64,000 bases of DNA from the NCBI GenBank assembly GCA_004431415.1, contig QPMI01000435.1, forward strand, positions 124,001-188,000, written 5' to 3'. The DNA is from Cyanophora paradoxa CCMP329. Its lineage: Eukaryota > Plantae > Glaucophyta. A model generated the notes under the pieces. The model did not search any database and was not told where the DNA came from. It saw only the letters and a program-made list of their open reading frames with translations. The position numbers and the translations under genes were made by a program. This document shows positions 24,741 to 41,788 of this stretch, in pieces. Within the stretch, counting starts at the first letter, position 1; each line of letters starts with the position of its first letter.

Positions 24741-27700
24741 ATGGACCTCCCGATCCCTACGGCCGCGGATTCAGAAATTGACCACGAGGACGCTTTGACG
24801 GTTGAAGCAACCGCCAGCTGCAGCCACAACGGGGCTATCGATATCGATCATGATCACGAGGGGTCTCTGATCTTGCCGGCGCACGTTTCGTTCAGACGGG
24901 CGGCACCGGCAATGAGCGCCTCATCGCCTAGATCCAGTCAGAAATCGGCTCCGAGTGTCGGCAAGTGGCTCAAAGAAACGCGTTCCATTGCAGCGAAACG
25001 GAGCGGTACAGCGCGAGAAGCAGGCGCGTCGACTGTCGGCGCTGGCGGCTCTGGCTCGCGGAGAAGCATCGATCGCGAGCCGCCTGCACTGCCAATGCCC
25101 TCAGTGGTGAGCGCGCGGCGGATCGCATCTCTCAACGTGGTTTCTACCGCCTCGAACGCAATGACGGCCAACGTCAACTCTTTTGCCGCATCCCTCCAGG
25201 ATCCGGACTTGTTCGACGACGTCAGCGATCGCGACCTGCAGCTGACTGCATCCGCTGCCGTTCTCTTCCGTGATCCCGACGCGGGCTCCAACAGCCCGCC
25301 GTCTGCAGCTGGAGATGCATGCGGAGACTGCGCATCGCCGGTTTCTCGAAAGCGCGTGTCTATTATTTCCGTGCAAGATGCCGTTGTCCTCCAGCTCGAG
25401 AGACCGCAGTCGAGCACGCGCAGAGACTCCGTCGAGCTCGACGTGCCGTTGCCGCCCTCCTCGTCGGCAGCGTTTGCAATTGCGTCTCCGACGGAGGCTC
25501 GAGCTGCCAGCGTGGTCGCCAGGCCAAGCCTACGGCGGCGTAACTCGAGCGGAGCCTGCCTCGGGAGGGAGATCATCGGCCGCGGCGCACGCGGTGAGGG
25601 CGAGGTGGTCTCGCGGACGTTCGAGGCGGAGTGGGACGAGCAAGAGAAAGGAGCGCCCATGACCATGGCGAGGCGATTGACCTCCGGAAGCAACCTTCTG
25701 GACATCGTAGCGCGGAGAGAGTCCACGCTGTCGAGCCCCCAGCCGCTGTCTCCCCACTCGCGTATTGCCTCCGGACAAGACCTCCGGATCCCGAGCGATC
25801 TGTGCGACGATGTCACCTATATAGCTATTTTGACGCCGGCGCCGGCGCCCACGTCAACCCGGCCCCCGCTGATTCACATTTGTCGTTCCCGCAGGTTTGC
25901 CTGCCGCGGGAGTCCTCGTCTGAAGTTATGCGGCCAATTGCAAGTGCAGCCCTCCGCGTCCCAGTCGGCAAATGATCCACAGGCAAGGGGACGCGCTCAT
26001 CGGAATTCCGGATCCAAGTTAGGCGCCGCGGCCGGCAAACCGCGGCATGCGATTGCGCGCTGGTGGAACGGAATTAGCCTGCGTTCGAAGCACTTCTCAA
26101 TCATTTTCATGGCCCAGACAGGGCTTCTTCGTGCGCACAATGATCCTTCGTTTGCTGTCAGCATTATTATTCGAATTCTTATTCTCGAGCTCGCTTTGCC
26201 AGTCACCATTGGCCTTTTGGTGTTCGCCTTCTTCAACTGGCGGTGAGTTTGACTTCTGCAGTCTTTCCAGATCGAAAATTAAATCTCCGGTTTCGATTCA
26301 TGATATCGATCCGCTGGAACTGCCGCCCCGCGCCGATTGTGACCCGCTCGGCTCTTGCAGTGTTCCAGAGATTCATGTACAGGAGCAGGCGAGGCTGGAG
26401 CTCTCCCACCTTAAGACCGCTGTTGCAGTTGCGGTGAAGGTGCTCGCGCGTGCGGTCGAGTTTACACAGCTGCAGTCTTGCGCGTCGAGATCTGATCACA
26501 AGCACAAACGTGCAGACACACGTCTCTTACAGAGATGCGATTGAAGAGACTCTGGCCGAGTTCCGGGAAGGTTACGCTGCCGTGTATACGATGCACATGC
26601 CCTACCCATGGCCAGTTGCTTCCGATCGGCTGCCGCAGCTGGCCTCGTCATTACTACTGCACACCTCCGAAGGTGAGCTCCAGCTAATGCTGCTTCCTTC
26701 TCATATAATTACACAAAGCGAGCTTTGTTTCGATCCTTGCGATTGGCGCAGCGCAATTGCAACCCATGGCCAGTGTCGACGTCGAGGTTGCTGCCGACGT
26801 AATGCAGTCGCTGTTATCCCAGCTTGCCAAGGGCGCTCCATCTGCCGAGGGCAGGTGGAACCCGGGCGGGGGGGAGATGCTGGTCCAGGCTGCCGTGCAG
26901 AGCAGCGCGACCCAAGGGCAGTCCCTCCTCGTGGTGCGCTCATGATCATGATCATGGCTCGAGATCGCTCCAGCTCGCGATTTGAAATGCGTCGTTCCAC
27001 AAGCGGCGCTCACATTCCATATGCATGTACGTGTACAGGTCCGAGGAACGCAATCGCTGCCGGCGGTAGACTCCACGCGGCGCGCGCTGTTTGTCGCCAT
27101 CTGCATTGCACTGCCCGTGCTCCTGCTCGCCAGCGGGGTGATGGCGTTTCTGCTCGGCCACGCCCTGGTCAAGCCTATCCGCCGCCTTCAATGTGCGGAC
27201 AAACTTCGCCCGTGGCCGCTTATGTGATAGAGCTTAAGCATCTGACTTGTTCCCGGCGAAACGCGCTGCAGTAACCGTCGAAGCGCTCTCTGGCTACGAC
27301 GGGACTCGTGGAAACTCTTACGAACATCACAGCAAGGTTTGCTTTCAAAAACAAGAGGCTATAGCCAGATGAGCGGTATAAATATATAATATAATAATTG
27401 GTGTGGTTCTGCAGATCCAGCTACAGGGGTGCGGGACGCGCGCCGTCGTGGAGTCGGGAGACGAGATCGGCCGCTTGGCGCTCTCTTTCAACGGCCTAAT
27501 GGATCGTGTCGATGAGGTGCACCTTCCGCAGCTCGTATATAAACACCAGTATTATGTCAGCTAGCTATAGAATTTTAATTTGGTGTCCGGCTCGGCTCAT
27601 ATTCCTGTTCTTGCGCGCGCAGGCCTGGAAGGACATCCGCGGCTTGCTGAAGCAGGCGGCCATCGAAGAGTTTCGCGCCCGGCAGATCATGGACACCGCG

Positions 27701-30700
27701 AACGACGCCGTGGTGCGCCTCTGGCTATGGCATTGACCAAGAATTGTTTCTCTGAAGTTCGGCCACCTCTGCGCAAATCGTAGGTGCTCATCAACGGCGA
27801 TTCGATCATCCAGTCTTTAAACGGCACGTTCACCGACGTCTTCGGCTACACGGTGCGCGCCCGAGGGCGCAGTTACATAACATCATATACATAGTTTAGT
27901 CAGGATCAAAGCTCACCTCCATGTTTCTACGATTAATATATATTAAGTCCATGTTTACTTTTATTACGCAGGCGGACGAGCTGATAGGGAAGTCTGTCAA
28001 CTTGATTATGCCCCGCCGTTATGCCGATCACCACGGTGCCGACGTACCGGTCCATGCCGGCTCCTCTGCTTTTCCTTGATTGTCTGCAGAGGGCTACGTG
28101 AGGCGGTACCTGGACACGGGGGAGAGCCACATCCTGGGGACCATCCGCGAGGTGGAGGCGCTCCACAAGGACGGCCACGAGTTCCCCGTCGAGCTCTCCA
28201 TGTCGTGCGCCCGCCCGTGGCCGCGCTCGGCCAGCGCTGTCTCTCTTCCACCCGACGCAAACCTTTCCATTGACATGGCGTGAACGTTATCCGCCTCGCC
28301 TCGCAGGGAAATGATCATCGGCAAAGAGCACTTGTGCGTCTGCCCGGGTCTCTGAATGCGCATGCAGAGATCTGGTGTGTGTCCTGATCCGTCGCGTCTC
28401 GCACGTCCGCGCAGCTTCGTGGGCATGCTGCGGGACATCTCGGCACGCAAGGACATGGAGGCGGCCCTCCGCAAGCAGCGCTCGAAGACGCTAGCGCTGC
28501 TGCGGAACATGCTGCCGCCCCGCATCGCGCAGCGCCTGATGGACTCGCCCAACGAGAGCATCGCCGACCGCTGCGAGAACGTCACCATCCTCTTTGCCGA
28601 TATCGGTGCGCCCGAGTTTTGCTCGCGCGTGTTCAATCTGTTGTCTGCTTCAAATTAAAAGACGCTTACTTTGTTGTTGCGCAGTGGGATTCACTCCTCT
28701 GGCGGGTGGTATGGACGCGGGCAAGCTTGTCTCGCTGTTGAACGCCATCTTCTCGGAATTCGACGTGCTCGCCGCGCAATACCAAGTCGAGAAAATAAAG
28801 ACTATCGTGCGCTCTCACCCGCAATCACGCTCCAATTCGCCCGTTGGGCCGGAGTGCACGTGATAGGGAGCTCACCTTATCGCAGGGGGACGCGATTATG
28901 TGTGCGGCGGGGCTGAAGGACACGACGGAGCGGCCGTTGAGCGCGGGCGGTAACGGCGGGACCGACGAGAGCGGTCTGGAGCGGATGGCGGTGCGCTCTA
29001 AGCCTGAGCGTGGGACGCGCCTAACTGCTGCGCCGAGTTCGAATTGACCACATCCGACGCAGCGCATGGCGTTGGAGATGCACGAAGTCGTCGCGCAGCG
29101 GAGAGACGCCGACGGGAACCCGCTGAGGCTGCGTATCGGGATTCATCATGGCGTTGTTGTCGCGGGGTCCGTTGCATGATAACATCGCAATTGGGACCGA
29201 TTTATGCGCCGAGGCCTTCGTCGAGGCTGATGATCATGTGCGTGCGCAGCGTGATCGGCAAGAAGAAATTCTTGTTCGACTTGGTGCGCCGTCGTGTGCG
29301 ACTGCGCGACTGCGCTGGTTCGACTTGCACATGCATATGCTGATTCTGAATCGTGTGCATTTTGCAGTGGGGCGACGACGTGAACATGGCAAGGTAATTC
29401 TGCGCGCGCCTTAACGCCTCAAGCTCCATTTTCACTGTAATCGTTCGCGCGCTTTAATTCTCTCAGTCGTCTGGAGAGCTCGGGCGTGCCGGGTAAGACG
29501 CAGGTCAGCATGGACGTGCACACCCGGCTGAAGGATTCGCCGTTCTTCACCTTCGGTGAGCATCGTTTCAATTATTCATGATCAGCATCGATATCGATAA
29601 CGCATGCATATGCATCTTCATATGTCGTAAGCTTGGTCTGAGTTTCCCGCTTTGACAGAGGAACGCGGTGCCGTATTCATCAAAGGCAAAGGAGGCGAGC
29701 TTGCAACTGTTTCGACTTCTCATTTAAATTGTCCGTGTTTCGCAGACTGACCCAGTTTTTGTACGTTCCTTGCCCCGCAGACATGCAAACGTTCCTGCTC
29801 TCTGCAGGACCAGCGTTCCAGCCAGCAAGGTCCCGCACCAGCCATGCGCCGCTGGAGCGAAGGTGGCATTCTCCGTGACACATCCTCCTCGTTTCTCTAA
29901 ACGCTTCTCTGAACGATGTTTGCGGTCTTCGAATTCTGCGCGCAGTGACAGCATGTCCGCCCAATTAACTTCCATCAACAAGTCCATTGTCTCGGCCTGG
30001 CAGGTGCACTTGCAATTGGCCGATGCCGCGCTGGAAATCCCGTGGCTCCGGCCAGTGCGTTTTCTGACGTCGACGTTGGCGCCGACAGGAGCTGCGCAGC
30101 GTCGCCATCGGAAGCAACGAGAGCACTGCGAATGCGGACATGCTCCAGTCGCTCCGCGTGGTCACGCGGCGCCACAAGGCGCGCCGGGAGACGATACTGC
30201 GGCTCGACCTGGCGAGCATCTCCGTGTTCGACCTGCAGGAGGAGGACGGCCCGGCGCTCTTCCGCCGCCTCGTCGAGGACCTCGGGGTGCGAGCGGCTCC
30301 TCCAGCTCACACTGCTCGTGCGGTGAGGTATCAGGGCACACATAACCCCTCCGGGACTTCTGCAGCTGGACAAGGCGCTCGGGCTGGACCTGAACATGGT
30401 CGAGGAGCTCGCCGACCACGCGCTGCGCGACCACCGCGAAGTCCCGGTGAGCGCTCTCTTCGAGTTCGATTCGAGTGCTTGCGCTTGGTCTGGAAGACCG
30501 GCGTAACTCTTGCATTTGCAACGGGCAGTACCACAACAGGCTCCACGCGATGGACGTGTCGCTCACGACGCACGCGCTGCTGAAGTCCAGCAAGGCGGCC
30601 GAGCCCGGGCAGCACCCGCACGCCGTCCACGCTGCCGGCGCCGCGCCGCACGAGATCCGGCTGACGGAGATCGACCGGCTCGCTCTGATGCTCGCCGCCG

Positions 30701-32148
30701 TGTGTCACGGTGCGACACTGATAATGATAATTATGTCCTGACTTTGCATAATCGAGCATCGAGCTTATGCGTTGTCGCGCGCGCACGCACCAGACCTCGA
30801 CCACCCAGGGCTTCTGAAAAAGCACCCGAAGCTACAAGCGCTGGCCTCGATGACATCAGTCGAGGCGGCCGCAAAGCTCGAGCGCTCTTTCAGGAACAGG
30901 CCGCGCAGCCGCCAGTCGCTCGAGGCGCACCACGCTAACCGCTGCGTCGAGCTGCTCGAGAGGCACCTCCGGGCCATCGCCCCCTCCCTTATCGACGCTG
31001 AGATCCTCCACATTCAGAAGGTGCGACGAATTCGACGCTTTTTTCGAGATCCTCGATGCATCGCCATTGGACGACGTTTGCAGTTATCGACTTCTGATAT
31101 CGAATTGCGCAGCTGGCGTTGGAGAGCATCCTTGACACGAACATGGACATCCATGAGGTAACTACGTATATATATACACAATCACGATGGCAGACATTCG
31201 CTTGCTTACAATTAGGAGATGGAGCTCGAGAGAGTCTGACTGTGGACTTCGCCTCCGCAGGAGTTCATGGCCCGCTTCAAGGCGTTCTTCTCTATCGATC
31301 GCAATGTCGACGTCGCGGGCTCGAGCTCCGGCACGGGATCGATATCGGGCACTGGAGCAGCAGCGAACGGATCGGGGGCGCCCGCGCCGACGCCGACGCA
31401 GGAGGCGGCAGCTGCGGATGCGGCTGCGGCTGCAGGGGGCCAATTGCAGCCGCACGGCACGGACGTCATGCAGCACCTGAACCTGGGCGCTGACACCGCC
31501 GCCGGCGTCGACGTCGGGGAGGTCGCGGACGTCGACGGCGCCGACGGCGACGCTGGCGGCGACCGGCTGTACGCGGGGCGGCAGCTCCTGTGCGGCGCCA
31601 TCCTCAAGGTCGCCGACCTCGGGTGCGCCGCCGATGCTCCCGAGCCCTCTAACTAATTGCATTCCACTCGCAACTGGCATGGCTCGTTCATGCCTGTACG
31701 TGCACAGGAACGCTGCGCGCCCGTTCGCGGACGCGCGGCGCTGGGCGCGGCGCATCGTGCTGGAGCTGGGCCTCGCGTCGGCGGCGGCGTCGGGGTCGGG
31801 GTCGGCGTCGGGCGGGGCGAGCTGCGGGCCGGAGGCGGACCTGTCGGGGGAGGGCCCCCTCTCGGACGAGGCGCTGGCGGGGCCGCAGGACGCCTTCCTC
31901 CGCCGCGTCGCCCTGCCCCTTTTCGAGACCGTCGCCCGCATCCTCCCCGAGGTCCGCCCTGTTCCGGCCCGGCCCGCAAGCAAGCTTAGCTTAAGCCGCC
32001 CCTCGGAATCGAACTCGCGCGGGGGCTAACCGGCGGGCAGGCCGTGCGGCCGATGCTGGAGCGGGCGGCGGTGAACGCCGACGCGTGGAGCTCCCTCAAG
32101 AGGCGCTCCGACGAGGAGAGCGGCCGTGCCAACCTGTGCGAGATTTAG
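24741..32148 (+). CDS. Membrane receptor adenylate cyclase-phosphodiesterase fusion: disordered N-terminus, TM, extracytoplasmic sensor, TM, HAMP, FixL-type PAS, class III adenylate cyclase, class I PDE (spliced)
   Basis: TM1 at ~26170-26240 and TM2 at ~27080-27170. HAMP LVKPIRRL...GDEIGRLALSFNGLM. PAS ...VFGYT|ADELIGKSVNLIMPPRYADHHEGYVRRYLDTGESHILGTIREV. Cyclase FADI|VGFT, EKIKTI|GDA, LRIGIHHG, FDL|WGDDVNMA|SRLES, IKGKG. PDE YHNRLHAMDV, CHDLDHPG, LEAHH, KVADLG|N, PQDAFL. Stop TAG at 32146-32148. Confidence 0.88.
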
Positions 32149-33906: not shown

Positions 33907-34121
33907 GGCGTACGCGGCGCACTGCAGCAGCGAGCTCGAGGAAGCGGAAATCTAGAGGAGACAGCTAGCTATAGGGAGAAGTGGTTCCATGCAGAACCGC
34001 GCAAGTAAGAGCAAGGCGTACGCGACGCACTGCGAGGAAGCTCAAGCCGAAATCTAGAGGAGACAGCTAGCTATAGGGAGAACTGGTTCCATGCGCATGC
34101 AGACTCTGAGAACCGCGCAAG
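33907..34121. repeat. Two-copy ~108-bp direct repeat with copy-specific short insertions
   Basis: ggcgtacgcg(g/a)cgcactgc...gaaatctagaggagacagctagctatagggagaa(g/c)tggttccatgc...gaaccgcgcaag occurs twice. Confidence 0.85.
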
Positions 34122-34333
34122 GAATTTGAAGACCGGAGTTAGAGAGAAGTTAGTTTTCCCCTCGAAAACCACTTTTTCCCCTCGACTTTGATCATGACGC
34201 TCGAAAGTCGAAAGCTGACCGGTCCACCGAGCCAATCGGATCGCGAATAAAGCAACATTTTTTTCAGGTGTTGCAAACTGGACCTCGAAAACGGCCTCAT
34301 AGAAAAATTTTGGCTGAAGCGAGGGAACGGGAA

Positions 34334-34355
34334 GCAAGGGGGGAACCCCCCTTGC
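34334..34355. other. Perfect hairpin GCAAGGGGGG-AA-CCCCCCTTGC; possible mobile-element end
   Basis: 10-bp stem with a 2-nt loop. Its first 14 nt also occur at 33089-33102. Confidence 0.6.
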
Positions 34356-34475
34356 AATTTGAAGTGCCGTCGACGCAAACAAGGGCATGAACACACGGCA
34401 TAGCTGTCCCGCGATCGGTGGCTCCGCTCTCGTTGGGCGAGTAAAGAGCAAGAGACGGGCCCGCCTCTGCCGAAA

Positions 34476-37400
34476 TCACAGCGCGTCGGGGTCCTCGCTC
34501 TCGTCCGACTCCCGCCCCGTCCACGCGCCACACGCCCCGGCCGCAGCCTCCCCCGCCCCGCCCCCGGGCCCCTCGCGATCGCCCGCCGCCCACGGCCAGC
34601 CTGCCGCCCCCGCGCGTCGGCCCAATGGGCACCAGCGCGGCGAGGGGCGGGGCGGGCTGGCGCCGGCGGACCCTGGAGCATGCGGCGGAGGGCGGGCGGG
34701 GCGACCTCGCCGTGCGGGCGCCCCGCGGCGTCCCGCGGCAGATCCCCGGGCCCGTGCGCCTCTAGCAGCGCCAGCAGCGGCCCCCGCCTCCCCAGCTGCG
34801 CCGCGGGTGTCGGGGTGCAGACGGGGCGCGCGGGCCAGGGCGGGGAGGGGCGCGCCCTGGCGGCGACGTGCAGAGGGGTGGCGCCGCCGCTGTCACGCGC
34901 GGCCAGCAGCTCCCGGAGCGACTCCTGCCGCCGCTCAGAGGGCGCGAAGCGCAGGGCGCGGGGCGGCGCACCCGCCCGCAGCGGAGGAGGGCGCGCAGGA
35001 GCAGGCCGACGTGCCGCCCCGCCGCCGCCACGTGCAGCTGCGATCCCGTCGGGCCGCGTCGGAGGGGAGGCAGGGCGCAGAAGGGGCGCACGGGCGTGCG
35101 GCCGGCGGCGTCGCGGGCGGCGAGGGGCGAGGCGGCGACGAGGGCGTCGGCGGCGCGCTCGACGTCGGGCAGCGCGGCGGGGCCTCCCGCCCACGGGCGC
35201 CGCCACAGCTGCCGCCGCGCGATGCGGTGCAGCGGCGTGCGCCCGCGCAGGTCGGCCGCGCCGGCCGCCTCGGGCCGGGCCCGCAGGAGCGCCTCGAGGA
35301 GGGCGCAGGCGGCGCGCCAGTCGGCCTCGCCGGCGCCGAAGCGGAGGCCGTGGAGGGCGGTGGCGCCCTCCGCGTCCGCCGCGCGCGGGTCGCACCCCGC
35401 CGCCAGCAGCGCCTCCGCGACGCCGTACTCGTTCGCGCGGCACGCCACCGCGAGCGGCGTCCGCCCGGCGGGGTCCGGCGCCGAGAGCGCCCCGGCGAGC
35501 CCGCGGCGGCTGCGAGGATCGGGCCCCAGTGCGCGATTCGCCCCGCCGCCGCCTGCAGCGGAGCCTCGAGTCCGTCAAAATAAAGGGAAAGAAAGCAGGC
35601 GAATTCAGAGGGGCGGACGTGGTGGGCGAGGGTGCGGCCGGCGCCGTCGGTCGCGTCGAGCGCCGCCCCGCGCCCCAGCAGCTTTCCCAGCAGCGCCGCG
35701 ACCTCCTCCGCCTCCTCGCCCCCCGCCCCCGCCTCCGCCTCCGCCCTGCAGCCCGCGCCGGCAGCGCTCAGATGGAAGAGGCGAGGGGCTCCGCGGCCCG
35801 CGCGCGGGGCGCACGCGGCCGGCTCGTCCTCGGCGCGCCCCCTGGCGGGAGGCGAGCTCAGCACCGACGCGGTGCATCGAAGGCAGGCTGTGGCAGAGGC
35901 GCACTCGGCGGGGCCGGCGGGGCGGCGCGGACGGGGCGCGAAGAGGGCGAAGAGGATGGGGGAATCCGGGGGCCCGAGGAGCGGGTCGGCCCCGCGCGCC
36001 AGCAGCGCCCCCGCCGCCCCGTACAGCCGCCCCTCCACCGCCAGCCACAGCGCCGTCCTGCGCCCCGACCCCGGCGTCAGCCGCGCGGGGAAAGTGCGGG
36101 GGAAGGGCGGCGCGCTTCTGGTGCTCGTCCCGGGCGTCGAGGGGCAGGGGCCGCCCCGCCGCCCCCGCCTCCAGCAGCGCCTGCACCCGGGTCAGGCGGC
36201 GGCGCGGGCGCACACGGCGAGGGGCGGGCGGGCCTCGAGGCAGGCGGGGCGGCGGGCGGCGGCGGCGGCGTGGAGCGGGGTGCGGCCGGCGCGGTCGCGG
36301 GCGGCGGGGTCGGCGCCGGCGCGCAGGAGCAGCCGCAGGGCCTCCGGGCTGGCGGCGGCGGCGGCGAGGTGCAGCGGCGCCTTCCCCTCCAAATCCGCCA
36401 GCGACGCGTCCACCCCGGGCAGCTGCGCGCGGCTCCTCGGAACCCGAGGGGGGGGGGGGAGGCGCGGGGGGTACCTGGAGGAGGGCGTGGAGGAAGCGGG
36501 GCGGGGCGGGGGCGGGCCCCTCGAGGGCGGCGTGGAGGGCCGTGCGGCCGCGCCCGTCCCGCTCGTTCACGTCCGCATCGGGCCGCACTGGCGGAAAAGG
36601 CCGCGGTCAGAGCTCGAGGGCGGGGGCGCAGGCGGGCGGGGGCGGGGCCGGGCGGACGCTGGGCGATCTCGGCGAACTCGGGGAGGCGGCAGCGGACGGC
36701 GGCGAGCAGCGCGCCCCGCAGCGCCGCCGGCGTCGCCAGCGCCACCAGCAGCCGCAGCACCGGCCGCAGCGGCCGCGCAGCCGCCGCCGCCGCCGCTGTC
36801 CCGCACGGCTCCGCCTCGAGCTCCGCCGCCGCCTCCGCCTCGGCCGCGCGGGCGGCCGCCAGCGCCTCGAGCGCCGCCACGAGCGGCGTCCTGCCCTCCT
36901 CGTCTGCGCGCCGCCGCTCGGTCAAGAGAGCAGCGGAAATGGGACTGCTCGGGGGCGGACCGAGGGACTCGAGGAGGCGGGGCCGGGCCTCGGCGATGGT
37001 GCGGATGGCCTCGGCCAGCGTCGGGTCCTCCTCGGGGCGGGCGGCGAGCGCGTGCAGCGCCCCCCGGCGGCCGGGGTCGGCGCCCAGGGCGAGGAGAGCG
37101 CGGAGGACGGGGATGGAGAACGAGGCCTCCGGGTGCTGGAGCATCACCTCCAGCGGCGTCCGCCCCGCCTCGTTCGCAGCAGGCTGGTTCGCCAGCGGTC
37201 CCAGGCCCATCCCCGCCAGGATCTGCCGGCGAGGGCGGGGGGCGGCGTCCTCAGGGGAGGTGGCGGGGGGCGCGGGAGGGGCGCGGGGCGGGCGCCTGGG
37301 GGAGGTCGGCGGGGTGGCACTCGGAGGGGTCGCAGGGCGCCAGCAGGTGCAGCGCGTTCTCCCCCGGCTGGGCCGACCTGCCGCCCGGGCTCAGGGGGTA

Positions 37401-40400
37401 CATGGCGAGACGCGGGGAGGGGGTAGGCGCACGTGTCGGAGACGCTGTAGAGGCTGGTGGGGTACGGGGCGACCTGCGCCCCGCCCGTGTCAGAGAACGA
37501 AGCGGGCGGGCGGGCCGGGGGACGGGGCGCGCGAAGGGGTCGGGGAAGAGGGGCCCGCAGGGGCGGACGAGGGCGGCCTGCGGGGTTCGGGATCGAACGG
37601 ACGGGCGCGTCGGGATCGAACGAATTCGAGCGGGCGCACCTGGGAGGCGCCGAGCTCGAGGAGGCGGCCGGCGACCGCCCACATGAGCCCGTCCACCGCC
37701 CCTGCGCCCTCGTGAGGGGCCGGAGGGGGCGCGGGGGGCCGGGGCCGAGGGCGGGAAGCACGGAGGAAGGGCGTGCGGCCGTTGCCGTCCACCGCCTCGA
37801 GCCCCGCACACGGGCCCAGGCCCAGCGCCACCTGCCGGCGAGCGTTTGGCGGGGGGAGAAGGCGGCAGGGGGGTACGGGAGCGCGCCTCCTGGAGGGTGG
37901 GCTCGACGAGCCGCAGCTGCTCGGCTTCCGACTGCTCCACCTCCGCCAGCTCCAGCTGCGGGGGGTATCGGGAAGGGCGGGGGGGAGAAGGCCGGGGTAC
38001 GCGCGTCGTCGAAGGCGCCGGAGGTGAGAAGGCGGAGGGCGGGGCGGGCGGCGCGCAGGGGCGCGAGGGCCGCCGCGAGGTCCCCGGGGGGCGCCACCGG
38101 CAGCTCCGGCGTCGGCGCCCGCGGCCGGCACTGCCCCCCGTCAGCTCCGGGGGGGGGGATGAAGCGGAGGGGGGTGCACGATGTAGAGGAAGGAGAGGCG
38201 GGGGCTCCCCTCCGCGAGCTCCGCCAGAACCTCCGCCGCCGCCTGGGGGAGAGGATGAGCGGGGGGAGAAGGACGACGAGGGGTACGGGTGCCTCGTCGA
38301 GGACGGTGTCGCTGGCGTCGAGGGCCGTCAGCGCCGGCAGCCTGCGCCCCGCCGCGTCGGACCCGGCGAGCGCGGGCGGGGCGGGGCGGGGCGGGGCGGG
38401 GCGGGGGCGGGCGGACGGGATGGCGCGGAGGGAGCCGAGGGCCGACTTGGGCGCCTTGCGCCCCTCCTTCCCCTGGAAGACCGCCGTCGACCTGCCCCCG
38501 CCACGTCAGGGCTCGCAATGGGAGGGCGTCTCTCTCTCGAGGCCCCAGGGCTCGCAATGGGGGGAGGAGCTCGCAATGCTCTCCCAGGCTCTCTCGCCGG
38601 GGGACGCGGGGCGCACGAGATGTAGAGGGCGCGGAGGGAGGCGGCGGAGGCCTCGACGAGGTCGACGAGCACGCCCCGCGCCACTTGCGCGAACGAGAGG
38701 TTCAGCACCTGCCGCGCGCGGGGCGAGGAGGAGTCAGGGGGGCGGTCGGGGGGAGAGGAGGGGGCGGGGGCGCCTGGAGGGAGGGCGGGGCGGGGTGGAT
38801 GCGCTCGCGGAGGACGCAGGGCGCGAAGGCGAGGGAGAGGTGCGTCAGGTTCTGCAGCGGCGGCAGCAGCTGCACGGCGGGCCCGGGCCAGAGCGAGGTC
38901 AGCGGGCAGCGCGGCGCCGGCGGCGGGGGGCCTCGGAGCGGGGAGGAGCGGACGGAGCGGAAGTCGGCGGCGGAGAGGCGGGCGATGTGGCCCGCGCGGA
39001 GGCGCCGCACGTACTCGCGCATCCGCCGGCACGAGGCGAGCACGAAGCCCGCCGGGTCGCCGGCCTGCGCGCAGGAGTGAGGCGAGGAGCGGGGGGCCGT
39101 CCAGAGGGAAGGCGGGGGCGCACGGCGAAGGACGGCTCCTCGAACCAGTCCGGCTGCCAGCAGAGCGCCCGCAGCCGCCGCGAGGCCCGCCCCACGCCCC
39201 GCAGCGCCCCCGCCGGGCCCCCCTCGTCCACGAGCGGCTGCAGGATCCGCACCAGAATCTCGTCTGCGGTACGGGTTACTCGGAGGTGGGGGGTGGGGGA
39301 AGGGAAAGATCTGGAGGGGGGAATGAGAGCGGGGCGCACCGGGGAGCTGCTCGAAGGGGGAGAGGCTTTCGAGCGGGGGTAGAGGCGGGGAGGGCGGGCG
39401 GGGGGTCGGGGAGGAGGGGCCGGGTTCCGGGGGCGGCGAGGGGACGGAGGCGGTCCGATTGGCGGGCCGGCCTGGGCCTGCGTGGGTACGGTGAGATGGA
39501 GCAGCGGGGCGAGAGGGGCGGCGTGGCACCGGTGGGGGGGTTGGGGGCGGCCTTGGGGCTGACTGGATCGGGGGCCTGCTGCTGGGCCCGAAGGTTGGAG
39601 GAGGGGCCGGAGGGGGGCGGCGCGGAGCGCAGCACGGGGCGGTGGGGAGCGGGGGCGGCGGGGGCGGGGGCGGAGAAGATGCGCCCGGATCGGAGGGACG
39701 AGGGAGCGTCGAGGTCTGGAGGGGTCGCGGGACGGGCCGCGGGGGCCGCACGGGCCGGAGCGGGGGCGGGGCGGGGCTCCTGGCTCGGGGGTACGGGTGC
39801 CGTCGCCTTGGTTTTAGCGGCCTCCGGAGCGGCGGAGGGGCCCGGAGCTGGTGCGGCCTTGGGCGCCGCTTGGGGACGGGCGGGCGCCGCCCCCGGGGCG
39901 GGGGCCGCGCTGGGGGGCGCCGAGGAGGGGCGCGCGCCGCCGGGGGGCGCCGAGAGAGGCTGGGGCCTCGCGAACACGGGCATGATGGGGTACGCGGGTG
40001 CAAAGCTGAAGGCGGGGTACACGATGCCCGGGGGGTACTGGACGCGGTGCTGCTGGGGGTACTGGACCGCAGGGTGGCGGTGGCTGCCGGCAAGGGCGGA
40101 TGGGGACGCCTGTGCTGCGGGCGCGGGGAGGTACTGCGGGGGAGCCGTCGAGGGGGCCGCCCCGTACCAGCCCGGCGACTGCAGGCGCGGGGCCTGCGCC
40201 GCCGCCGCCGCCGCCGCCGGCGCGTAAGTTGCGCCGGGCAACAGCGCCTGTGGCGGGGGAGGCTGCGAGAGCGACGGCGGAGGCGCCAACCGCGGCCCCG
40301 GCTGCATGCTGGAGCCGGCCGCCGTCTGTATGCCGGCGCCAGGGGCGGGACGGATGCCGGCGCCGGGAGCCGCTTGCATGCCGGGGCCGGGCGCGTGATG

Positions 40401-41423
40401 GATGCCGGAGCCGGATGCGGGATAGGAGCCGGGCAAAGGATTGATGCCGGAGCCGGATGCGTGACGGGGGCTGGAAGCGGGCACCGCTTGGATGCCGGGG
40501 CCGGGCGCGGGTTGGATGCCTGGGCCGGGGGCGTGCCTGATCAAGGTTTTGCGGGGCGCTGCAGCTTGGCTTGACGCGGCCGCGGGCCCGCGGGCTGACG
40601 GGGGCGGGCCGATCCCGATGGAGCGCGCGTGCGCAGACGTGGCCAGCGCGCTGCTGCTCGCCGCGTGCGGCGGCGGACCCGGGCCGCAGAGCAGAGGCGG
40701 TGGGGGCCGGGGCCGCGCTGCGGTTGTCGCTGCCACCTCTGCCGCCGCTGGCGCGCGCTGTGCCGCCCAGCTGTGCGGTACGAGCCCCGGGGCGGACGAT
40801 CCCTGGGCCGCGATCGGAGCACGCGGGGAGGCAGCCTCGAGATCCGCAGACGGGCCCCGCGCCGCGGGCGCGCCCCAGACAGGAGACCCCCGGCTCCGCT
40901 CGCCGAGCCCAGCGACGCTGGCGCTTGCGGCTTCGGAATGCTGCTGAGAATACCAGTTCGTGTTCTCGCGCGCCTGAGCCGGCACGTTTGCCTGAGCAAG
41001 CTGCGGTTGCGGCGTTCCCGCTGGCGCCGCGTCCTCGCTGGCTACGCGCGCGGATAGGACGCGGTACAGCTGCGCTGTTGTAGATGGTGTAGATGACGTT
41101 CCTGCTGCGCCGCGAGCGACGGCCATGCCCGCTGCCGATGCATCCGAGGCGCGCAGTTCAAAAGGAGCCTGCAACTGCGGACGCTGCAGCGGAGCGGATC
41201 CCCAAACGGGCGGCGTTTCCGGTTGAAAAGAGAACGCTGGAAGGTACACATGCGCTTCCGGATCACGGTTGCGAGCCTGCTGCACCTCCGCACCCAGCAG
41301 CCGCGCTCGCTTTGCGTCGTCGAGCGCGCGGGCTGGCCATGACGGCTCCGGTCGCTCCCGCTTTGGCGTACTGTGACCGAAAGCTAGCTCGTTTGCGAGC
41401 GCTTCCTCGATCTCGCGCTCCAT
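34476..41423 (-). CDS. Large F-box/LRR/ankyrin-repeat protein with a long Pro/Ala-rich N-terminus (spliced)
   Basis: F-box SPFEQLP|DEILVRILQPL...LRGVGRASRRLRAL (~39360-39160). LRR-like LQNLTHLSLA and VLNLSFAQV. Many ankyrin motifs (DGNGRTP, NEAGRTPL, DEEGRTPL, DGRGRTALH, DLEGKAPLHLAA, DRAGRTPLH, DSGGATPLH). Stop at 34476-34478. Confidence 0.78.
40290..40530 (-). repeat. Coding octapeptide (24-nt) repeat (P/S)G(P/S/A)G(I/M)xxA, about 9 degenerate copies
   Basis: PGPGIQPA PGPGIQAV ... SGSGIHHA PGPGMQAA PGAGIRPA PGAGIQTA in the 39276..41423 ORF. Confidence 0.8.
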
Positions 41424-41788
41424 GCGTAGCGCCTACACTTTTGAAATCTCGGTACCCGCGCGCGACGCCAAACTTGCGGCCAAAGTTGCGGCCAAACTGA
41501 CGAACTGGAAGGCCCGCCCCACGCCCATCGACTCTCCGTCCATCCATCTGCACGCGCTATTGTAAAGACGCTGCGGAAGCTGCAGCTGCGTTCTCTTCCG
41601 CGAGATCAGCTCGCCGCTCCAGGCGATCCGCAGCGCGGTGAGCCCCGAGGCGCGTGCAGATAGCTGCAACCTTTGCTAGCAAACCTGGATCGATGCGCGA
41701 TCGCCCTCCCTGATCTTGCGATCCTTCTGCAGCTGCCCGCCGACAGTTGTCCGCAGAAGCACGGATCGCGGATCTCGTCGCTGCATCC

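Follow-up and report, generated by a model that had tools for sequence, protein, structure and literature searches.

Single polypeptides that both synthesize and degrade a second messenger are the rule for cyclic di-GMP (c-di-GMP) in bacteria and are rare for cyclic AMP (cAMP) and cyclic GMP. In eukaryotes, class III nucleotidyl cyclases have been described in fusion with class I phosphodiesterases (PDEs). A bifunctional guanylyl cyclase (GC)/PDE of diatoms, reported in 2016, is supported by transcripts, is induced by sex pheromone, and has two transmembrane (TM) helices N-terminal to both catalytic domains, a domain combination that its authors called diatom specific (PMC4726125, PMC5485032). 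In the CAPE proteins of streptophytes with motile sperm, including Marchantia, and in the CAPE-like proteins of oomycetes, the PDE is N-terminal and the adenylyl cyclase (AC) is C-terminal, and both activities of the Marchantia protein have been shown biochemically (PMC5159850, PMC8115329, PMC11032487). Here, we describe a gene in a 64,000-nucleotide stretch of the genome of the glaucophyte Cyanophora paradoxa CCMP329 (assembly GCA_004431415.1, contig QPMI01000435.1, positions 124,001 to 188,000 of the forward strand; referred to here as the window). We consider it probable that this one nuclear gene encodes a receptor enzyme in which two TM helices, a HAMP-like segment, and a haem-binding PAS domain precede an AC, a linker, and a class I PDE.

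Gene model and domain order

Window coordinates are used throughout. Exon borders were taken from three-frame views of the DNA and checked with a coordinate-only script; the joined model was used for the analysis of frame, hydropathy, and codon-position GC content, and database searches were run with single exons or with the public gene model P0001 as a stand-in. P0001 is a 789-residue protein (EukProt EP00741_Cyanophora_paradoxa_P012693, gene tig00020616_g12263) that was found when 1.84 billion representative sequences were searched with the stretch of exon 23, starting one codon upstream at 30086; the two are 99% identical, and tblastn maps P0001 to the window locus. Apart from this protein's own cluster and one spurious repeat protein, the exon 23 stretch matched nothing else among the 1.84 billion representatives.

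The coding model (Table 1) contains no internal stop in its joined frame, as judged from the coordinate-based check, and its start and stop are those of the original prediction for this locus, which was made from the DNA letters alone. The 29 introns are 54 to 119 nucleotides (nt) long, and all are of the GT-AG type save for a single GC-AG intron. Read from the N terminus, the protein consists of a low-complexity region, a pair of membrane helices separated by a loop of about 150 residues, a HAMP-like segment, a FixL-type PAS domain, a class III cyclase, a linker of some 55 residues, and a class I PDE. The same order emerged from the plus-strand stop-to-stop pieces, three of which matched Pfam Guanylate_cyc and, after them, two PDEase_I, all downstream of the HAMP match. 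GC content at third codon positions (GC3) is 0.71 to 1.00 in the exons of the PAS, cyclase, and PDE domains, compared with 0.52 to 0.56 in introns; the exception is exon 20, of 12 codons, at 0.50.

Much of the original prediction was borne out by these analyses. The continuous frame that it proposed from cyclase to PDE was recovered with exactly the same junctions (IKGKG/DMQTF, LER/SDSMSAQ, and AWQ/ELRSV, where the slash marks an exon junction), and the motifs on which it had based an ATP-using cyclase (FADI, GDA, VNMAS/R, EKIKT, and FDL/WG) could all be read. Its two membrane helices appear as hydropathy peaks, followed by the HAMP-like segment (22.8 bits at best). Of the profiles that it named, Guanylate_cyc (PF00211; 119.9 bits, cut-off of 21.9), PDEase_I (PF00233; 83.6 bits, cut-off of 24.8), and PAS (49.6 bits) all matched P0001, but HAMP, on exon 7 of the window gene, remained under its cut-off. 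Single exon pieces of the window gene gave 27.0, 32.9, and 15.3 bits for Guanylate_cyc and 26.8 bits for PDEase_I.

The cyclase

All six catalytic residues of a class III cyclase are present in one chain, the arrangement of the homodimeric type, and they align with those of the Cyanophora paralogues and of cyanobacterial cyclases. The substrate pair is Lys/Asp, as in ACs, and not the Glu/Cys pair of GCs; the link between these positions and substrate specificity is established for the C2 domain of mammalian ACs and for GCs. On these residues, the cyclase should be a homodimeric AC with ATP as its substrate.

The junction between cyclase and PDE

Splice logic and conservation among paralogues make it very probable that the cyclase and the PDE lie on a single transcript. 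One argument is the uniformity of the introns: the three that link the enzymes (29695-29780, 29863-29945, and 30004-30088) are 83 to 86 nt in length, use GC-AG, GT-AG, and GT-AG signals, respectively, fit in phase, and resemble the other 26. Another is provided by exon 21. The motif KGKGxMxTYFL, which ends the cyclase in all paralogues, is rebuilt only by the GC-AG splice, and cyanobacterial relatives share the cyclase end motif that exon 21 (DMQTFLL) completes; exon 21 is therefore a cyclase exon that continues into the linker. The paralogue P0003, whose overall identity to the window gene is only 75 to 77%, has an 18-residue peptide identical to that of exon 22, and the peptide leads there into the same ELRSVA entry to the PDE. 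To these are added at least eight Cyanophora gene models that contain both PF00211 and PF00233 (P0001, P0003, P0005, P0007, P0008, P0122, P0123, and P0124) and the exon order of a diverged second copy of the gene. This copy was recovered as low-depth contigs from DNA runs X1 and X4 (depth of 3 to 8, versus 12 to 13 for the main copy), which align exon by exon between 28213 and a point beyond 30651 and keep the cyclase-to-PDE order.

Several observations weigh against a single transcript. Linker exons 21 and 22 have a GC3 of 0.67 and 0.75, a moderate coding signal; retention of the intron at 29863-29945 would bring in a stop at 29876-29878, five codons in; and exon 22 holds an ATG, so that a separate PDE transcript is conceivable. 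RNA reads of the locus were not found among public sequencing runs, in which the four matching runs were all genomic and dated from 2012 and the runs presumed to be RNA gave only low-complexity matches at the locus, and no short transcript-derived proteins across the junction were found with residues 285 to 445 of P0003 (P0003:285-445) as the query. The paralogue models all come from one prediction pipeline and so are not independent proof of transcripts. The early stop, the ATG, the weaker codon signal of the linker exons, and the want of RNA support in runs and transcript-derived proteins are what two adjacent genes, wrongly joined, would offer, with the receptor cyclase terminating at about 29878 and the PDE starting near 29955. 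We regard this arrangement as highly improbable, given that the gap from stop to ATG would be only about 77 nt, that the linking introns share their size and splice signals with the rest, that cyclase is followed by PDE at no fewer than eight loci, each modelled as a single gene, and that the exon 22 peptide is conserved in P0003 on both sides of the ATG. The reading that we prefer is one gene with one transcript.

The second copy differs from the window gene in other respects. At 30236-30253, its differences yield the residues found in P0003 (Gln to Arg and Pro to Ala). At 30413-30520, 26 letters replace 108, in frame and with the residue count unchanged, such that the intron at 30447-30528 seems to be absent or reshaped; the second copy encodes DGQYHN at this point, unlike the P0003 model, which reads DVPYHN.

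The PDE domain

The four metal ligands and the catalytic His of the PDE are intact and align with those of PDEs in the PDB (matches with E values as low as 3.7e-11 for the closest paralogue), a PDE5-like protein of the moth Danaus, and a PDE of Ostreococcus; the transfer of PDE4D2 residue numbers to the motifs of the window is our own assignment. In PDE4D2, His164, His200, Asp201, and Asp318 are metal ligands and His160 is catalytic (PMC12839185). The Asp of the ATDM motif was considered as a zinc ligand and rejected, as the ligand Asp318 of PDE4D2 belongs to ADLSN, a motif that is intact in the window gene.

Two features of the domain speak against an ordinary active enzyme. The ATDM motif reads DTNM, with Asn for Asp, in the window gene and P0003, in contrast to the reference PDEs and the remaining paralogues, which retain Asp; to our knowledge, no human PDE family lacks this Asp. 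The residues that follow HDLDHPG form a stretch 10 to 14 residues longer than usual, without the customary xNxFL..LA..Y motif; by comparison with PDE2 and PDE5 structures, we take this stretch to be the H-loop that can gate the active site. Both features are common to the window copy and P0003 and set them apart from canonical PDEs and from five paralogues. The core of the domain is otherwise almost identical between P0001 and P0003, and this, together with the unusual features that they share, indicates that the PDE domain is under selection.

Such a pattern could also arise if the fusion were real but the PDE were weak or noncatalytic, binding cAMP and feeding back on the cyclase or on partner proteins in the manner of degenerate EAL and GGDEF domains. 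The replaced Asp, which is retained in every other PDE aligned, the lengthened segment with its lost motif, and a core conserved to an extent that implies retention for some function are all in keeping with this explanation, as is a precedent within the family: P0005 combines two PAS domains and an intact cyclase with a degenerate PDE (His to Arg at HA, HD to MD, and ADLxN to AHYGT) and, with three of the four metal ligands lost, is by its sequence a pseudo-PDE. Against it, none of the four metal ligands has been lost from the window gene, nor have the catalytic His, the Glu/His pair, or the purine-clamp Gln, and the exchange of Asp for Asn is isosteric. We consider a weak or noncatalytic PDE of this kind unlikely. 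An active PDE is the outcome that these residues somewhat favour, with an activity that may be reduced; it is plausible rather than proven because of the ATDM Asn and the lengthened loop. For this copy, the degradation of cAMP is less certain than the original prediction proposed.

The FixL-type PAS domain and the helical connector

The PAS domain matched the haem domains of FixL in the PDB (1d06, E value of 6.8e-26; 1dp6, E value of 3.3e-23) and also DosP, at about 5e-12. The codon at 28032-28034 aligns with the proximal His of FixL, and the FixL residues are matched in this alignment by the His of ADHH/E and by an Arg in each of VRRY and GTIREV. Because the match is to a haem domain and includes the proximal His and two Arg residues, the domain probably binds haem and senses O2, NO, or CO. 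Between the PAS domain and the cyclase, a helical connector carries the usual LL.NMLP..IA..L motif; exon 13 resembles the end of Pfam HNOBA on its C-terminal side (18.4 bits, below the cut-off), as do P0124 and P0005.

The N-terminal half

Hydropathy analysis of the joined model revealed exactly two membrane segments, separated by about 150 residues; a GTGAGT donor at 26243 lies immediately after the first. The segment that follows the second membrane helix occupies the position expected of a HAMP domain and, as judged from profile matches, is likely to be one, and in the paralogue P0124 positions 1 to 52 of the 53 HAMP positions are covered, with 21.1 bits. The score of the window gene counts against this assignment: the domain is split over three exons, and HAMP (PF00672) on exon 7 alone reached 20.9 to 22.8 bits (best E value of 1.2e-4), against a cut-off of 25.

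The region upstream of the helices is less securely assigned. Exon 1 has a weak codon-position signal (GC3 of 0.67 versus 0.57 at second positions), which argues against its being coding, and no Pfam family matched its N-terminal region. By our estimate, the chance of a 500-codon open frame at this composition is about 2e-7 for one frame, and exon 1 is for that reason probably coding; the position of the true start codon is uncertain.

No Pfam family matched the loop between the helices, which is about half the length of the corresponding sensors of P0122 and P0124; these paralogue sensors themselves matched neither a Pfam family nor a PDB chain. A likeness of the N-terminal part to P0122 and P0124 that was seen by eye was not confirmed by BLASTP, and a comparison of the N-terminal exons of the window gene with P0124 detected no similarity in the sensor, an observation that weighs against the preferred reading.

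The public gene model and the Cyanophora family

P0001, an automated public model, already joins PAS, cyclase, and PDE, but is flawed. It is truncated, beginning at MDRVDE in the middle of the HAMP segment, and is mis-spliced from FLFDL to ELRSV, a jump that removes exons 18 to 22 and with them the final third of the cyclase together with the linker; a further splice leaves the HD motif without its Asp. Surveys of domain content that relied on P0001 would consequently misjudge both enzymes.

Other members of the family are more complete. P0124 (1499 residues) contains two TM helices, HAMP, PAS, cyclase, and PDE within one model, and the AlphaFold model of P0123 (pLDDT of 83) shows two confident domains with a disordered joint of about 20 residues. 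P0008 and P0122 (tig00000178_g12720 and g12721) are consecutive models on one contig, are 87% identical in the PDE part, and constitute a tandem duplication.

The window gene could also be a duplicate of an expressed family member that has fallen silent or begun to decay, as a young pseudogene, a view with which the failure to find RNA reads of the locus among public runs, an outside sensor much shorter than those of P0122 and P0124 and dissimilar by BLASTP to that of P0124, and the divergence of the PDE would agree. A decaying copy would hardly be expected to retain all 30 exons and their splice sites with neither frameshift nor stop, very high GC3 in its domain exons, and unusual PDE features that it has in common with P0003 around a conserved core, and we accordingly give this explanation very little credence. 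The preferred reading is that of an intact gene.

TABLE 1 Features of the cyclase/PDE gene in window coordinates
Feature	Position	Strand	Basis or remark
Whole coding model	24741..32148	+	ATG at 24741, stop TAG at 32146-32148; 30 exons, 1630 codons
Exon 1 N-terminal region, ~467 residues, Ala/Ser/Arg/Pro-rich	24741..26141	+	500-codon open frame
Membrane helix 1, end of exon 1	26142..26242	+	Hydropathy peak of 2.51, residues 468-502
Extracytoplasmic loop, ~150 residues, exons 2-4 and start of exon 5	26361..27080	+	Between the membrane helices
Membrane helix 2	27081..27164	+	Hydropathy peak of 2.65, residues 650-685
HAMP-like segment, exons 5-7	27165..27516	+	Pfam HAMP on exon 7
FixL-type PAS, exons 8-13	27671..28439	+	PDB 1d06/1dp6 matches, Pfam PAS
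Helical connector (signalling helix/cyclase transducer element)	28440..28556	+	Before cyclase
Class III cyclase catalytic domain, exons 13-21	28557..29800	+	Pfam Guanylate_cyc on three exon pieces
Cyclase metal Asp codons	28599-28601 and 28889-28891	+	Motifs FADI, IGDA
Cyclase Lys codon	28798-28800	+	Motif EKIKT
Cyclase Asp codon (substrate pair)	29278-29280	+	Motif FDL/WG
Cyclase Asn and Arg codons	29383-29385 and 29468-29470	+	Motif VNMAS/R
Sole GC-AG intron of 29, between IKGKG and DMQTFLL	29695..29780	+	Within conserved cyclase end motif
Linker, ~55 residues, rest of exon 21, exon 22, and start of exon 23	29801..30140	+	Splice reading
Class I PDE catalytic domain, exons 23-30	30141..32145	+	Pfam PDEase_I on exon pieces, PDB PDE alignments
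PDE His codons	30532-30534 and 30544-30546	+	Motif YHNRLHA (catalytic and metal-binding His)
PDE His-Asp codons	30706-30709 plus 30794-30795	+	Motif CH/DLDHPG, split by intron
PDE Glu codon	30922-30924	+	Motif LEAHH (Glu/His)
PDE Asn in place of invariant Asp	31140-31142	+	ILDTNMDIH
PDE second metal Asp codon	31615-31617	+	Motif ADLG/N
PDE purine-clamp Gln codon	31886-31888	+	DNA view

The flanks of the gene

The window is GC-rich, and the region from 24 to 33 kb that contains the gene is lower in GC (0.54 to 0.66) than its flanks. At 34000-41500 and 1-2000, the flanks have a GC content of about 0.8 with strong GC skew and contain very long open frames, of up to 1011 codons, in several frames and on both strands. 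No Pfam family matched these long open reading frames, and the open frames in the GC-rich flanks are no evidence of genes.

Proposed mechanism and significance

We suggest that the low-complexity N terminus would be cytoplasmic, with the small loop between the helices on the outside, and that the protein would dimerize through HAMP, PAS, and cyclase; dimerization is proposed because class III cyclases are obligate dimers. Signals from a gas, an outside ligand, or both would pass down the helical connector and switch the synthesis of cAMP, and the PDE, tethered by a flexible linker, would hydrolyse cAMP near its source, such that the signal stays local and brief. In the window copy and P0003, where the metal ligands are kept, the Asn in ATDM and the longer loop may give rise to a slower or regulated PDE. 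A more far-reaching proposal, which we put forward tentatively and regard as rather doubtful, is that of an independent chimera, in which a cyanobacterium-derived TM sensor-HAMP-haem PAS-cyclase joined to a eukaryotic PDE would form a gas-gated, self-terminating generator of cAMP pulses, and in which the PDE of window-like copies, with its Asn in ATDM and its extended loop, would have become a regulated or product-sensing module. Such a conversion would, by analogy, parallel the active and degenerate GGDEF-EAL proteins of bacteria.

With this glaucophyte family, of no fewer than eight members, the eukaryotic lineages with cyclase/PDE fusions would number three or four, and the fusion would be the first in which the enzymes are preceded by a HAMP relay and an apparent haem-based sensor of gas. 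It is possible that a eukaryotic pathway here took over a cyanobacterial receptor-cyclase. The influence of a tethered PDE on local cAMP signals could be studied in the family as a natural experiment, and the canonical, altered, and degenerate PDE domains within one genome form a ready-made series for comparison. A gas-switched cyclase with a built-in off-switch could also supply compact parts of possible use in synthetic signalling.

Comparison with known systems

The two halves of the protein have different relatives. The best non-Cyanophora matches to the PAS-plus-cyclase part were cyanobacterial HAMP-PAS-cyclases, with 38 to 41% identity; the nearest non-Cyanophora PDE sequences were the Ostreococcus PDE and the Danaus PDE5-like protein, with 26 to 28% identity; and the nearest predicted folds were cyanobacterial for the cyclase half and animal PDEs for the PDE half. 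These similarities are compatible with a chimeric origin, in which the receptor cyclase would be of cyanobacterial type and the PDE eukaryotic. The Cyanophora cyclases grouped as one clade (support of 96) in a quick tree, among cyanobacterial sequences whose branching was poorly resolved; because sampling for the tree favoured hits to the query, a cyanobacterial origin is consistent with the data and not proven. The cyanobacterial receptors (e.g., P0015-P0018, of about 1200 residues) share the HAMP-PAS-cyclase order and end after KG.GEM.TY.L, but they are intron-free bacterial genes without a PDE.

The putative input domain recalls FixL and DosP, in which the aligned proximal His and Arg residues are likewise found, and DosP also resembles the window protein in coupling a haem-PAS to domains of second-messenger turnover (GGDEF-EAL). 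The predicted output differs in both cases, being the synthesis and hydrolysis of cAMP instead of a histidine kinase or the turnover of c-di-GMP. Among bacteria, proteins of 440 to 480 residues from Bacteroidota join a class III cyclase to an HD domain (PF01966) in several ESM Atlas clusters of 56 to 139 members and may be a make-and-break counterpart.

A search of the literature found no paper on cyclase/PDE fusion proteins in Cyanophora, and searches with the PDE part detected fusions in Cyanophora only, with no close diatom kin. Both Pfam families also occur together in an ESM Atlas cluster of 130 proteins, mostly from diatoms, which was the nearest by features (0.94; a feature score and not an alignment), and a fold search there with the P0123 model returned single-domain matches only. 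The original prediction had held the architecture to be undescribed. This does not apply to the fusion as such, which is known, since the diatom GC/PDE and CAPE are published, and the Cyanophora model P0001 was itself already fused; what does appear to be new is the input through HAMP and a FixL-type haem-PAS, the adenylyl specificity, and the occurrence of a family in a glaucophyte. CAPE resembles the window protein in that a class III AC and a class I PDE are combined, but the order is reversed, as the original prediction had noted, and neither HAMP nor PAS has been reported in it (PMC5159850, PMC8115329). In the diatom GC/PDE, too, a class III cyclase and a class I PDE share one chain behind two predicted TM helices, and the outside loop, which the window protein also possesses, is proposed to bind ligand. 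The diatom enzyme is predicted to be guanylyl specific, in contrast to the ATP-type Lys/Asp pair of the window cyclase, and HAMP and haem-PAS have not been reported there (PMC4726125, PMC5485032).

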